Of a stretch of DNA of 58,941 bases, positions 7,851-13,432 are shown in pieces. Each line of letters starts with the position of its first letter. Within the stretch, counting starts at the first letter, position 1. A program made the translations under genes and the position numbers. Source of the DNA: Ministeria vibrans ATCC 50519 (Eukaryota > Protista > Filasterea); assembly GCA_943704425.1 (NCBI GenBank), contig CALSCP010001920.1:1-58941 (forward strand), in the 5' to 3' direction. The notes beneath the pieces are model-generated. The model was not told the origin of the DNA, ran no database searches, and worked only from the letters and a program-made list of their open reading frames with translations.

Positions 7851-10800
7851 ATGATCGTTGTTTTGCTTTTCGCGCTCTTGCCACTTCTCTCGAGCGCACG
7901 CTCGCCGTGCGGAACGCTCTCATCTCAGGTACATACATATCGTGCAGGGATTGCCACAGTCGGTCGCTCAACGTGTTTTTTTCCCCGCTGTGCTTCAGGA
8001 GTCGTTTTTGCTTGCGCAAAATGGCGTTGTAAACGGCTCGCTGACGATTCCGGCGGGCGTCTATACTCCCCGCGTACTCCCGCTTGTTCTCGCTGACGGG
8101 GCCCAGCTCACCGTCGACGCGGGCGCCGTGTTTCTGGGCTCCTGCGCCGATTCGTCGTTGACAGCCCCTCACGCTTTTCTCGTCGCCGCGTCCGCCTCAG
8201 CAAGCGTGACTGGCGGCGTCTTCCGTGACTTTGTCGTCTCGTCGCCCATGGTCGTCAGCAAGAATGCATCGTTCTCACTCTCGTCAGCACACTTTTCCGA
8301 CAATATTATTGATCTGAGCGGGTTTACGCGAAGTTCTGCCTCGGAACAATGGTCACTGCTGGGGCCTGCCACCACCAGCGCCGGCGCCGGTGTTCTCAGT
8401 GTGCTCTCGGGTGCCACAGCGACCCTCGACACCATTGAAATTGCTCGGTGTGGCTCGGCCGGCGCTGGAGTTGCTCACCTTGAAACGTGGGCGTCGCTCC
8501 ACACTACCAACGTCAACATCACCGACTGTGCCGGCGGAATTGCCGGTATCGCCGTCCAGGATCCCTCGTCATTCATGGTGGCGGCAAACCTTGTAGTCGA
8601 CGGCGCCGTGGGAGTGAGCAGCAGCAGCAGTGACGATGACGCCGACAACACAGTGGGTGGCTTTCTCGTCGGCCATGGCGCTTCGCTCGTTCTCGAGTCA
8701 AGCCAACTGCGTCGCTGCTCTGGGAGCTGGGGAGGCGCCGTAGCGACGTCAGTGGGTGCCACAGGCACCGTCGCAGTGACCAACATTATCTTTGAGGGCA
8801 ACCACGTCACGGGCGATAAGGGCGGTGCAATTCACGCTGGGCAACGCACCACCGTTACGGTCGCTGCGTCCTCGTTCGCCAACAATGTCGCCGATACTTC
8901 GGGCGGTGCCATTGGCCTGTCGCAGCGTGCGATACTTGCTATGGGACCCGGATGTGTTTTCAACGGCAACCGCGCGCGCCTCGAAGGCGGCGATCTGTCA
9001 CTTGCGGATCGCTCGCACGCCGCCATCCAAGGCCCCGTCTTGTTCACCAACTCGTCGGCCCCCATTGGCGGCGTCTTTGTCGTGCACGCTCACGCATCGC
9101 TTAACATAAGTATCGACGTAACCATTGAATCGCCATCAGCGCTGTACGGTGGCACGGGTCTGGTCGATGGGCACGGGAGCGTAGCGCTGAGCGACCTCAG
9201 CCTGAGTGGCGGCGTGGCCTTGCGAGCGGGCGCTGTACTCGGGCGTGATTTTGCCACGCTCACTGTTCGCGACTCAGTTGTGCAAGGCTCGCGTGTGAAC
9301 ATGCGTGGTGGTGCCTTTGCTCTGGCAGACCAAGCGACGCTTGTGTTGGACAGGGTCATTGCGACGGACAACTGGGCAGCCCGTGGTGGTGTGGTGTACG
9401 CGGGGGAGATGAGCGAGGTGACGCTGCTCGATTGCAGTGTGTCAGGCAATGTCGCGATGTGGGGAGGTGGCGCTGTGGCGTCTACCGACTACACTCGTGT
9501 TACTCTCCTGGGAGGCACGTATTCCAACAATGCAGTGGTCCGTGGCGGTGGAGGTGTCATTGAGGCCGTTGACCGTGCTGTTGTGAACATGATTGGCGGC
9601 AACTACACTCGCAACTATGCGCCCAAGGGTGGTGTCACCAACCTGGACGGATGTGTCGACATGACGCAGATCAACGGGTCGTTTACATACAACGAGGCGA
9701 CCACTGGTGACGCACGGCCGTCGGGCGAGGGCGGTGTTAACCATGTGGAGACGCGGATCTTTGAAAACGACGCCAACCTGCGTGTTCCCTCGCCCATGCA
9801 CTACTCGTACAAGTTCTCCAATCACGTCTTTGCGCTGTTGAACGCGACACTGTTTACTCGCGTGACCACACACAACGATACGGCTCAGACGTTGTACGCC
9901 AGCGGTGACGCGGCCTCCAACCTGATGGTCCGTCTGGAAGAACAACCCGTTGAGCTCGTTGTCATGTCTACCAGATCAAACGACTACAAATTCAACCTGG
10001 CCGACTACGGCGCAGTTCACTACATGGTGGACACCTCAATTTCTGAGGGGCATATTCTGTATCTTCAAAATCATGCCAATGTTCATGGAGGCGCCACCTA
10101 CCTGTACTGGTGGCACTTCAGGGAGGTCAGTTGAAGAAAAAGAAGAAGAAGAAGAAGAATAATAATAATAATAATAATAATAATAATAATAATATAATAA
10201 TAATAATAATAATATAATACGTCTTAAAATTATTATTACTTTTCTTATTATTAATATTTTTTTCTTTCATTATTAGGACGATCCCGTCTTCCAAGAGTCC
10301 CCTTGGGCCTTCCACCACGCCTTGGGACACAATAAAGTGATTGGAAATTCCGCGGGCCAGAAAGGAGGCGCGCAATACTGGAAGGTACAGTACAGTATAA
10401 TAGTATTTTGATGGATTGATTCGCATGCCATCTTAACATGAATCCATTTCCATTTTTTTCATTGGTGTAGATGAACAAGACACCGGCTCGCACTCGCTGG
10501 AGTCAATCGGATGCAAACACGGCTGATGGATCGGGCAATATTGTCACGAACAACACGGCGAACATTGGTGGCTATCTGTACTTTGCCGACGTGAAAATTG
10601 ACGAAATCAACGAAGTGTTCACTGTGTTTGCGCTCCAGCAGTCGCTTGCTGACTCGGGTATCGGCCAGAACACCGGACGGACGTACGGCGATTTGTGGGG
10701 CAGCGACAAGTTCAAGCTATTCCTGCGCTGGGACCTATTGGGTACCCAACCGGCGCCCATTGCGCTGAACTCGGGCCAGCTGCTCGAGGTGCCACACATC

Positions 10801-13432
10801 ATTGAGATGGTCGACATGACACACACGCGAACCGTAACCAACTTTGACTTGGTGGAGTTGTCCATTGGCGCGTGTATTTCACGCTCGGACCCTCTGACAT
10901 TGAGCACAACGAGCGCCGTTGAGCTCGAGACGGACACGGTCAAGTTCAATTTGGCCAACGGTGTGGCCGACTGGCCAGTGATGCGTGTGTACGGTGACAC
11001 AGGCGACTACTGTGTGTACGTGAGTCCCGCCGCTACCGACAACATTGTGTATCGCATTACGCTTCAGGTGCGCATTGACGCGTGCTCTGGCATTGAGGTG
11101 GCGGACGGCGTGTCGTCGTCCAACTACCTGCGTTGCATGCAGGAACTTTTTATGCCGCGCGCGCTTCAGATCGCCTACACAAGTAGTGGCGCACTTCTGT
11201 TGGTGGCACTCTTAGTCACCGTGCTGTTGATATTGTGGCGTCGCAACTCAAACATTGTGCAAGTGACGGGACTGGCGACGTTGCTGGTGGTTGCCCTGGG
11301 CATGGCTATAGGGCTCATTGTGCCTATGCTGTGGAATCCCGCCGCAAGCACGGCCACCTGCCTCCTCTTCATGTGGTCCGCTCACATATGCTTTGTACTT
11401 GTCATCACACCCATTGTGGTCAAGCTGCTGCATCTGAAGTCGAGTGAGTCGGTCAACAATGTGAGCCTGCATGTGCCCACTCGCGACACACTGGTCCCCA
11501 CTACAATTGCACTGATCTTTGTGTGCATCTATTTGCTTGTGTGGACACTCGCAGACTCCTCCATTGGTGTGGGTGTTGTCTTTGACACGTCGACCGACAC
11601 GGCCTTCCGTCAATGTTCCTTCTCGTCGTCGGCTGTGCTCGTCATTGTGGCGTTCGAGGCGCTCGTGCTGCTCTGGCTGCTTTACGTGGTGTGGTCGACG
11701 CGCCACATCACGACAATGTTTGGCGAGTCGCAGCGCTACTACGCCGTTGTGGGAATGGTGAGTATTCTTTGCCTTGCGGCGGCCATTGTGTATGCAGTGT
11801 CGCGGAGCGACCGTGTGACAGGCCAGTACAGCGTAGCGGGGGGTGTCATGCTCATTTCGGCGCTTGCATTACTACTGTTCCTCTACATCCCGGTGTGCAT
11901 CAAGATGTTCCGCAAATCGTGGATGGGCGACGGACACCATCTGTTCTTGTCATACGCCAAGGGTGACAAGCAGTTTACAACACGACTGGCGCGTGCTCTC
12001 ACGGAACAGGGTTTGCGTGTGTACGTGGACGAAATTCGTCTTGACGCGGGAGCTGCGTGGCGCAAAGAGGTTGCGCAGCGTCTGCGTGCGTCGCAATATG
12101 TGCTCTTCTTGGTGTCGTCCGAGTCGGTGCAGTCGCGTTATTGTCAAGAGGAGGTTCAGTTTGCCTACGACAATCAGATTCAAGTACGAACGACAATTGC
12201 TCGTAATAATAATAATAATAATAATAATAATATTATTATTATTATTATTATTATTATTATTATTATTATTATTATTATTATTATTATTATTATTATTATT
12301 ATTATTATTATTATGTTTTGCTCTTCTCTATAATTTTATTTTTCTATTATTATTATTTTCTTATTTCTTATCGATCTCTCTATCAATTTGTTTCCCTCTC
12401 CTCTCTCTCTCTCTCTATCACTTTGTTTCTCTCCCTTCTCTCTCTCTTGCCCTCCTTTCTTTTGTTTTGCTTTATTGTTAGATTATTCCTTTGATTCTTC
12501 AGGAATCCTTTCACCAAACCATTGACTCGGGATTGGACATGCTCATCAAGCGTTTCCAATGGACTTCGTTTACGGACACGACCCAGTTCGATGAGAATGT
12601 ACGTCTGCTGTTGAAGGGACTGGAGCGAATGGAGTTGATGCAGCGACAGCAACGCGTTAATGACGGCGTGAAGGAGATGCACGGTGGCGTGGAGATGTCG
12701 TTTGCTCCGTCGCTTTGCCAGTCCGCAGCTCCTTCCAATGGGAGTGTATTGCCGCCAAATTATTTGTCGGAGTCTCTAAAGCCCAAGCAGGTGTTTTTGT
12801 CGTGGGCACACAAAGATGCGAGCTTTGTCAAGGAACAGCTGTGGCCTCAACTCGAGGAAGTCTCCATCGACTGTTGGATTGACTGTATTGGACTGTCGAG
12901 TGGTGCGTCGTGGCGTCGTGAGATTGGCCAGGCCATTGCTGGCTGTCGTCTGCTGTTGTTTGTGCTATCGCCCCGCTCTGCCAACTCACAGTACTGCGCT
13001 GAAGAGGTGCACTATGCACGATCGCAGGGCAAGCAGATTGTGGTGGTTGTTTTTGAGGAATCAACGCGCGTGCTAGCGTCGTTTCACAGCGACCTTGCCA
13101 CGGTCCTTTCGATGTGTCCCGTCATTGACTTTTCGCAGAACCCCGATGCGTTCTTTGCGAACTTTGAGCGTTTGGAGACCCTGATTAAGCGTGCGCTTCC
13201 ACACGCAGATGGAACAGAGGAGGAACAACGGCGCCTGTTAACTCCCACCGACGGCGACGTCTTTCAGTGGCCCGTGTCCCAAATCAATCCAGGCTCATCG
13301 GCGTATGCTATGCACCAAATTTTACCGCAGACGCTTGACTCGGCGGTGGACGTTCGCTCGTACAGCTCGCACATGTCACACGATCAACTGGAACTTGAGC
13401 CAGTCTTTCCAGTCCTTGAAACCGCGCTCTAA
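7851..13432 (+). CDS. Receptor of ~1,658 aa: signal peptide + Pmp/parallel beta-helix-like repeat ectodomain + class C GPCR-type 7TM + two TIR domains
   Basis: Exons 7851-7928, 7999-10125, 10277-10384, 10471-12183 and 12482-13432 join in frame via four phase-0 GT-AG introns. Contains GGAI/FxxN repeats, seven hydrophobic segments at ~11160-11910, and TIR box motifs LFLSYA...YCQEEV and VFLSWA...YCAEEV. Confidence 0.85.
12205..12313. repeat. (TAA)n/(TTA)n microsatellite in the intron that splits TIR1
   Basis: Directly visible. It gives the poly-N/poly-I tail of ORF 10471..12333. Confidence 0.95.

Follow-up and report, generated by a model that had tools for sequence, protein, structure and literature searches.

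Can a G-protein-coupled receptor (GPCR) and TIR domains, both among the most commonly used signalling modules in biology, act together within one receptor, and what would such a protein do? The question is raised by a gene at positions 7851-13432 (+) of contig CALSCP010001920.1 (assembly GCA_943704425.1) from the filasterean Ministeria vibrans ATCC 50519. The first 58,941 nt of this contig were analysed as the window, and all coordinates are window positions. To our knowledge, the two modules have not been known to occur joined in one polypeptide. Here, they are found in a transcribed gene and lie only ~8 residues apart, preceded by a signal peptide and an ectodomain with the predicted fold of a right-handed beta-helix. 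On balance, we think it probable that the product is a multi-pass surface receptor with ligand-controlled TIR signalling.

The receptor gene is a real, expressed, single gene with a single transcript. It comprises five exons of 26, 709, 36, 571 and 316 codons, i.e. 1,658 codons, which are all open and are separated by four introns, all of them GT..AG and all in phase 0. A first-pass annotation, made from the sequence letters, had proposed exactly this gene of five phase-0 exons and ~1,658 aa, with transcripts across the four junctions as a check, and the public RNA data agree with it in every point. In fact, one 5,144-nt contig from public run X6 spans positions 7789-13537 without any of the four introns, and its junctions are those predicted: the pieces 7789-7924, 7995-10123, 10275-10382, 10469-12183 and 12482-13537 are contiguous in the contig, with offsets of 2-4 nt that equal the stated cut ambiguity. 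Every junction has support from a second public run, with intron 1 removed in X19, intron 3 in X20 and intron 4 in X17. X20 is a polyA RNA-Seq library, and its contig has a 15-nt loose end matching the end of exon 2. The RNA label of run X6 is a guess; the loss of introns at four GT..AG borders is, however, impossible for genomic DNA. Since the four introns are missing from a single contig, it is excluded that the modules are encoded by separate genes. The public runs containing the locus are marine or algal-culture samples, and the three variants found in other runs relative to the window are all synonymous. Introns 2 and 4 have a GC content of 13 % and 21 %, respectively, versus 57 % in the coding sequence, and consist mostly of (AAT)n/(ATT)n and (CT)n microsatellites. 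The features of the gene are as follows.

7789-7850 (+): 5' untranslated region (UTR), given by the reach of the longest RNA-derived contig; contains no ATG.
7851-7928 (+): exon 1, start codon and signal-peptide-like hydrophobic N-terminus, 26 aa; junction 7928/7999 seen in X6 and X19.
7929-7998 (+): intron 1, 70 nt, GT..AG; spliced out in X6 and X19.
7999-10125 (+): exon 2, 709 aa, predicted right-handed parallel beta-helix ectodomain with Pmp-type repeats.
10126-10276 (+): intron 2, 151 nt, 13 % GC, rich in (AAT)n; spliced out in X6.
10277-10384 (+): exon 3, 36 aa, one further predicted beta-helix repeat unit; seen in X6 and X20 (piece 10275-10382).
10385-10470 (+): intron 3, 86 nt; spliced out in X6 and X20.
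10471-11157 (+): exon 4, aa 1-229, last beta-helix repeat followed by a membrane-proximal all-beta domain, both predicted.
11158-11916 (+): exon 4, aa 230-482, predicted class C-type seven-transmembrane (7TM) domain (7tm_3).
11917-11934 (+): linker between the last transmembrane helix (TM7) and the first TIR domain (TIR1), with a family-conserved Ser/Ala/Gly-Trp motif.
11935-12183 (+): exon 4, aa 489-571, N-terminal two thirds of TIR1, profile positions 2-77 of 122.
12184-12481 (+): intron 4, 298 nt, with (ATT)n and (CT)n tracts, splitting TIR1; spliced out in X6 and X17.
12482-12790 (+): exon 5, aa 1-103, remainder of TIR1 (conserved I-I-P-L-I-L ... F-Q-W-T) and the linker between the two TIR domains.
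12791-13174 (+): exon 5, aa 104-231, complete second TIR domain (TIR2).
13175-13432 (+): C-terminal tail without a recognised domain; stop codon at 13430-13432.
13433-13537 (+): 3' UTR, given by the reach of the RNA-derived contig.

Profile searches and structure models were run exon by exon. Together with the hydrophobic segments, the Pfam matches give the order that the first-pass annotation had read from the sequence, i.e. signal peptide, ectodomain of ~1,000 aa, seven transmembrane segments and two TIR domains. Its view of the individual modules, namely GGA and FxxN repeats of a Pmp-type beta-helix and a class C 7TM domain lacking the Venus flytrap of canonical class C receptors, was likewise upheld by the profile and fold comparisons below.

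The ectodomain before TM1 comprises ~1,000 residues in the exon translations. Exon 2 matches Pfam Beta_helix with 31.5 bits (cut-off 25.9) and TIGR01376 POMP_repeat with 22.6 bits (cut-off 15); the Pfam Chlam_PMP match of 20.3 bits is slightly below its cut-off of 20.6. The motif GG[AVG][IVLF] occurs nine times in this exon, mostly at a spacing of ~27 residues and beside FxxN repeats, and the family alignment of the ectodomain displays a regular N-x-A-x-x-G-G period. An AlphaFold2 (AF2) model of exon 2, built with 11 family sequences, has three-stranded coils (pLDDT 83.2, pTM 0.81) and a low-confidence insert at aa 587-650. Foldseek matches of this model are weak (all E > 1e-3); VIA-align on the same list reaches Z 24-27 against right-handed beta-helices, with a root-mean-square deviation of 2.7-3.2 over 260-474 residues. 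Its neighbours are a phage tail protein, the alginate epimerases AlgE4 and AlgG, pertactin, Vag8, GH110 enzymes, tailspikes and Rhombotarget A. Structural neighbours of the model thus include adhesins and autotransporter passengers (pertactin, Vag8, Ag43 and PfbA) as well as glycan enzymes, and no particular glycan-enzyme or adhesin family is singled out among them. A sequence search of the PDB with the ectodomain gave no match. Exon 3 and the first part of exon 4 continue the repeats; a small all-beta membrane-proximal domain (exon 4, aa ~80-225) follows, with two conserved cysteines directly before TM1. At the level of the predicted structure, the right-handed beta-helix fold of the ectodomain is confirmed. 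An autotransporter beta-barrel was not matched in any exon, and it is the 7TM domain that comes after the beta-helix instead. The likeness to chlamydial Pmp proteins and autotransporters is limited to the repeat motif and the general fold, and the receptor does not belong to the chlamydial autotransporter family.

The translation of exon 4 contains seven hydrophobic segments and matches Pfam 7tm_3 with 64.5 bits (cut-off 33.5) at aa 231-474, covering profile positions 6-250 of 251. In the AF2 model of this exon, seven helices extend over aa 230-481 with a pLDDT of mostly 73-93, and the top Foldseek matches of the 7TM part are all class C receptors, i.e. GABA-B, mGlu, GPR158, GPR156 and CaSR (probability 1.00, E 1e-9), with TM-scores of 0.73-0.75 to the 7TM-only chains 7shf_B and 8iep_C. 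By sequence, the nearest solved 7TM chains are those of GPR158/mGlyR (E 9e-4) and GABA-B2. Residues of exon 4 that align with GPR158 and GABA-B2 are the cysteines of TM3 and of the second extracellular loop, the lysine at the end of TM3, the glutamate of the F-x-E motif and the proline of TM7. Across 14 sequences, the loop cysteine C382 is invariant and the TM3 cysteine C297 nearly so, and both align with cysteines of GPR158. Equally, K318 at the cytoplasmic end of TM3 and E419 in the F-N-E motif before TM6 are nearly invariant and align with the corresponding lysine and glutamate of GPR158, while E419 is aligned with an aspartate in GABA-B2; these two positions are those of the class C ionic lock. 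The motifs noted earlier, STRHITTMFGES, LFLYIP and the TM3 pattern C..W...K, are present in the exon 4 translation.

The class C marks are incomplete in two respects. Of the TM7 motif P-K-x-Y, only the proline is kept in the window gene (I-P-V-C-I); its lysine and tyrosine are lost throughout the M. vibrans paralogue clade, whereas P-K is kept in relatives from Capsaspora and in TIR-less relatives. Moreover, neither ANF_receptor (the Venus flytrap) nor NCD3G gave a Pfam match in any exon. A Venus flytrap is, however, not universal in class C, since GPR158 and GPR156 do without one (PMC12716839). TIR-bearing 7TM domains score 40-105 bits against 7tm_3, compared with 150-190 bits for TIR-less relatives. 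In all sequence and fold comparisons, with the TM7 motif and the Venus flytrap as the only exceptions, the membrane domain is a divergent class C 7TM domain.

The fusion to TIR domains is written into the same exon. Exon 4 also matches TIR_2 with 68.4 bits at aa 492-567, and exon 5 holds TIR2 with 77.2 bits at aa 104-231 (cut-off 28 in both cases). As 7tm_3 and the first TIR_2 match lie within one uninterrupted open reading frame (ORF), the 7TM-TIR fusion needs no splicing argument. In the AF2 model of exon 4, the first strand of TIR1 begins ~8 residues after the last transmembrane helix, and a Ser/Ala/Gly-Trp motif directly follows TM7 in every TIR-bearing member of the family. When compared with solved structures by sequence, TIR1 is best matched by the NAD+ hydrolase AbTIR and other bacterial TIRs, and TIR2 by the TIRs of Toll-like receptors (TLR15/2, TLR6 and TLR1) and by PdTIR. 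Residue E561 of exon 4 (codon 12151-12153) aligns with the catalytic glutamate of AbTIR (W-T-N-Y-E), and E175 of exon 5 (codon 13004-13006) with the glutamate of the TLR motif C-x-x-E-L; in both TIRs, the position of the catalytic glutamate is invariant across all family members. The best defence-family matches of the TIRs in PADLOC are the short-pAgo TIR, ThsB and SAVED-TIR, all of them NAD-cleaving TIR families. Glutamate-bearing TIRs of unicellular eukaryotes can make cyclic ADP-ribose (cADPR) (preprint 10.64898/2026.04.20.719644).

The window gene is not alone. In the M. vibrans genome (29.7 Mb, 2,860 contigs), it is one of five paralogues, named here after their contigs as C1920 (the window gene), C2373 (61 % identical), C2106, C1006 and C2017. 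According to Pfam, the paralogue ORFs have the same module order as the window gene, with 7tm_3 scores of 40.8-57.5 bits. C2106 carries Beta_helix, 7tm_3 and TIR_2 in a single ORF of 1,406 codons, and C2017 combines Beta_helix (65.5 bits), Chlam_PMP (44.1 bits) and 7tm_3 in one ORF. Together, the five paralogues hold 10 of the 13 TIR_2 hits and five of the seven 7tm_3 loci of the genome.

Outside M. vibrans, a HMMER search with exon 4 was run against 1.84 billion cluster representatives. Among the best 150 matches listed, four have a contiguous 7TM and TIR match, i.e. CAOG_08484 (XP_011270066.1, 1,897 aa) and CAOG_08660 (XP_011270271.1, 2,102 aa) of Capsaspora owczarzaki and two metagenome fragments, one of which showed no difference from paralogue C2373 in any alignment block inspected. 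Both Capsaspora proteins show the full architecture, with Beta_helix or Chlam_PMP, 7tm_3 and two TIR_2 domains. The other metagenome fragment, a 3.2-kb contig of JGI metagenome 3300071654 (Ga0620614_038236), encodes in series a 7TM, a TIR and one or two more TIR pieces, with a TIR2 ~41 % identical to that of the window gene; this row of pieces represents a third lineage of the family. TIR-less relatives with Pmp-type repeats and the strong 7tm_3 scores mentioned above are found in Pigoraptor and Chromosphaera. In the 7TM tree, the five M. vibrans paralogues are monophyletic (96/95) and the TIR-less sequences form one clan (97/94), which agrees with one fusion, or one loss, and later duplications within individual lineages. 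Between the window gene and the Capsaspora proteins, identity is 42-43 % in TIR1 and 41-47 % in TIR2, 18-22 % in the 7TM domain and 15-18 % in the juxtamembrane domain. Judged by sequence identity, the TIRs are the best-conserved modules of the family, and the ectodomain diverges fast between paralogues.

Other searches contributed little. A word-indexed search with region 1000-1380 of C2106 returned bacterial TIR-only proteins alone and missed Capsaspora, and the same kind of search with exon 5 returned nothing at E <= 1e-8; the length window of this search excludes the full-length family, so that such a blank means little. A look-up of the 7TM-TIR part in the ESM Atlas gave no usable match, and a metagenome locus scan with the 7TM-TIR alignment gave 21 pattern matches, none of which was confirmed.

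Few TIR and class C genes are found elsewhere in the M. vibrans genome. Clear TIR proteins outside the receptor family are restricted to two, both soluble-looking: C2602 (667-2319), with a C-terminal TIR_2 domain (86 bits) behind a sub-threshold PB1 match (19.3 bits, cut-off 23.6), and C2128 (3624-4775, -), with a TIR_2 domain of 44.6 bits and an adjacent upstream ORF that shows sub-threshold TPR matches only. The two proteins are candidate cytosolic partners of the receptor TIRs. Class C 7TM loci without a TIR are likewise two, at C491 (91403-91981) and C1908 (5496-6324); C491 is by far the strongest 7tm_3 match of the genome (129 bits), unlike the divergent TIR-bearing 7TM domains.

How does this architecture compare with known systems? 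Closest among these are the two Capsaspora proteins, which share the module order, the short TM7-TIR1 linker with its S-W motif and TIRs that are 41-47 % identical; they differ in the low identity of the 7TM domain and in keeping the P-K motif that the window clade has lost. GPR158/mGlyR and the GABA-B receptors provide the best sequence and fold matches of the 7TM domain, including the aligned cysteines of TM3 and the second extracellular loop, the TM3 lysine and the glutamate or aspartate before TM6. GPR158 also resembles the receptor in lacking a Venus flytrap, and, as entry titles state, its structure has been solved together with RGS7-Gbeta5, an enzyme complex of the cell interior. GPR158 is known to act via RGS7-Gbeta5 and not by classic G-protein activation. 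However, neither GPR158 nor GABA-B has a beta-helix or a TIR domain, and both rely on effectors that are proteins of their own; here, the presumed effector is part of the receptor chain, 8 residues behind TM7.

With Toll-like receptors (TLRs), the receptor would share a position at the cell surface, an ectodomain built as a repeat solenoid and a cytoplasmic TIR, and TLR TIRs are among the best matches of TIR2. TLRs, in contrast, are single-pass proteins with leucine-rich repeats (LRRs) and one TIR, compared with seven predicted helices, a beta-helix and two TIRs in the present case, where no LRR family was matched by Pfam in any exon. From its sequence and modelled folds, the receptor is not a TLR. 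A third point of comparison is given by protist GPCRs fused to effectors, i.e. to a lipid kinase (GPCR-PIPK/RpkA), a protein kinase or an RGS domain (PMC5784254, PMC3971589, PMC12716839). These proteins, too, have a 7TM sensor covalently fused to its own intracellular signalling domain, but that domain is a lipid kinase, a protein kinase or an RGS domain and not a TIR. Finally, AbTIR, ThsB, the short-pAgo TIR, SARM1 and plant TNLs share TIR_2-type domains with the receptor, and the catalytic glutamate of AbTIR is aligned. Enzymatic TIRs such as those of SARM1, plant TNLs and bacteria are activated by oligomerisation via other sensor domains, and the proteins that carry them are soluble or single-pass, in contrast to a seven-helix receptor with putative TIR catalysis.

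The first-pass annotation had recognised no characterised family of this kind. This holds insofar as no description was found in the literature; the architecture is not unique to M. vibrans, as it was already present in CAOG_08484 and CAOG_08660, which have been public for years under no other database names than 'hypothetical protein' or 'TIR domain-containing protein'. The term 'TIR' does not occur in the main texts of two surveys of holozoan GPCRs (PMC12716839 and PMC3971589), whose supplementary tables may list such proteins, and a choanoflagellate TLR study reports no 7TM-TIR protein. A full-text literature search, the Capsaspora accessions included, retrieved no description of a 7TM-TIR protein, with a bare supplementary listing being possible. 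Therefore, the order beta-helix-7TM-TIR-TIR is an uncharacterised domain architecture that combines known kinds of module, and not a categorically new system.

The receptor is predicted to be oriented as in type I proteins, with the beta-helix outside the cell and both TIRs in the cytoplasm. As to its mode of action, a ligand may bind along the beta-helix; the likeliest candidates are polysaccharides or other surface polymers presented by bacteria, prey organisms or neighbouring cells. The bound ligand would then alter the conformation or the pairing of the 7TM domains. Class C receptors function as dimers, and a dimer of this style would gather four TIRs. The change in the 7TM domains could re-position the directly attached TIRs and bring them into, or release them from, self-association; in all TIR systems that have been studied well, the domains are active when associated. 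As output, either NAD+ would be cleaved, yielding an ADP-ribose-type messenger, or the genome's few soluble TIR proteins would be recruited; cleavage is considered because both TIRs retain the catalytic glutamate. We infer this function, i.e. a TIR output by an NAD+-cleaving enzyme (NADase) or by a scaffold, from sequence features. A direct coupling of sensing to the TIRs gains plausibility from three features, namely the linker of 8 residues, TIRs that are strongly conserved and a degenerate P-K-x-Y motif in TM7. A weakening of classic G-protein coupling is suggested by the same degenerate motif, by the weak 7tm_3 scores of TIR-bearing 7TM domains and by where TIR1 is placed; in the M. vibrans paralogue clade, such coupling may be reduced or lost. 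It is tempting to go further and to speculate on a G-protein-independent, ligand-gated 7TM dimer that assembles four TIRs into an NADase and so converts contact with an extracellular glycan or cell surface into a messenger, i.e. cADPR or ADP-ribose, or into local loss of NAD+. We put this stricter version forward tentatively, with more doubt than belief; if true, it would mean that TIR immunity by a surface receptor predates Toll-like receptors, in a close unicellular relative of animals.

Several observations speak against a receptor with ligand-controlled TIR signalling. The lysine and glutamate of the putative ionic lock are retained, and the M. vibrans genome contains at least three G-alpha genes and Ric8, which together leave room for classic G-protein coupling. 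Only four of 29 glutamate-bearing TIRs from unicellular eukaryotes were active in a bacterial assay (10.64898/2026.04.20.719644), so that the glutamate by itself says little in favour of catalysis. Beta-helices can be glycan binders or enzymes, but equally plain adhesins. Furthermore, TIR1 of the window gene was seen in two parts only, being split by intron 4, and the location of the receptor at the plasma membrane is assumed from the signal peptide and the topology only.

The same residues and genes would suit an ordinary class C GPCR whose signal passes to heterotrimeric G proteins and whose TIRs are accessories for adaptor docking, trafficking, clustering or desensitisation. Such a receptor would explain the conserved TM3 lysine and the glutamate before TM6, the G-alpha and Ric8 genes and the P-K motif retained by the Capsaspora members. 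The site at which class C receptors engage G proteins is known from established structures, and TIR1, starting ~8 residues after TM7, would lie right beside it. In addition, accessory TIRs would hardly be expected to be far better conserved than the 7TM domain, nor would a working G-protein coupler be expected to diverge so strongly from the Pfam profile in comparison with its TIR-less relatives, or to lose the lysine and tyrosine of P-K-x-Y as in the M. vibrans clade. We therefore regard this explanation as unlikely.

A role mainly in adhesion or self-recognition, in which the Pmp-like beta-helix would be an adhesin for substrate attachment, prey capture or aggregation and the 7TM-TIR part would anchor it and report contact, appears less probable still. 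It draws on the Pmp-type repeats, on the occurrence of pertactin, Vag8, Ag43 and PfbA beside glycan enzymes among the structural neighbours and on the fast divergence of the ectodomain between paralogues. Nevertheless, a mere anchor could do without conserved switch residues of class C and without a pair of strongly conserved TIRs, and contact-reporting overlaps with ligand-controlled TIR signalling instead of replacing it. As for an annotation artefact, i.e. ectodomain, 7TM domain and TIRs belonging to separate neighbouring genes or to a pseudogene, we found nothing in its support except the guessed RNA label of run X6 as a sole weakness. Against it stand the single contig without the four introns, the confirmation of junctions by the polyA RNA-Seq run and two more runs, 7tm_3 and TIR_2 in one ORF, the open state of all exons, the module order kept in five paralogues and two Capsaspora genes, and variants that are synonymous; its probability is practically nil. 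Ligand-controlled TIR signalling by a surface receptor hence remains our preferred explanation.

Two holozoan lineages have kept the 7TM-TIR fusion, and most TIR domains and class C receptors of the M. vibrans genome belong to it. If the TIRs are the output, the fusion would represent a new signalling mode for a seven-helix receptor. It would also be a pre-animal case of TIR output from a surface receptor without any relation to the LRR-based, single-pass Toll-like design, and would have implications for the organisation of innate immune sensing before animals arose. Transfection of Capsaspora, the second host of the family, has been reported.

Tyrosine-kinase-like domains are very numerous in the M. 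vibrans genome, with 173 matches, many of them in ORFs of 1,000-4,700 codons, which points to a receptor kinase expansion of the holozoan type.

The receptor gene is flanked by two genes on the opposite strand. The one upstream, at a distance of ~280 nt and in head-to-head orientation, is of bacterial type and encodes the anhydro-N-acetylmuramic acid kinase AnmK (6301-7569, -; 315.8 bits; three exon-like pieces); the genome has no other AnmK locus. A functional pairing of AnmK with the receptor was considered and is unsupported, AnmK being single copy and located beside no other GPCR-TIR paralogue. Downstream, an Hsp110-type gene (13596-15752, -; HSP70 family, 226 bits) is convergent and tail-to-tail with the receptor gene. 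Its product is closest to that of the filasterean Pigoraptor chileana (43 %), followed by animals, and the 3' ends of the two genes abut within ~2 nt, with the receptor RNA contig stopping at 13537 and the Hsp110 transcript contig starting at 13539.

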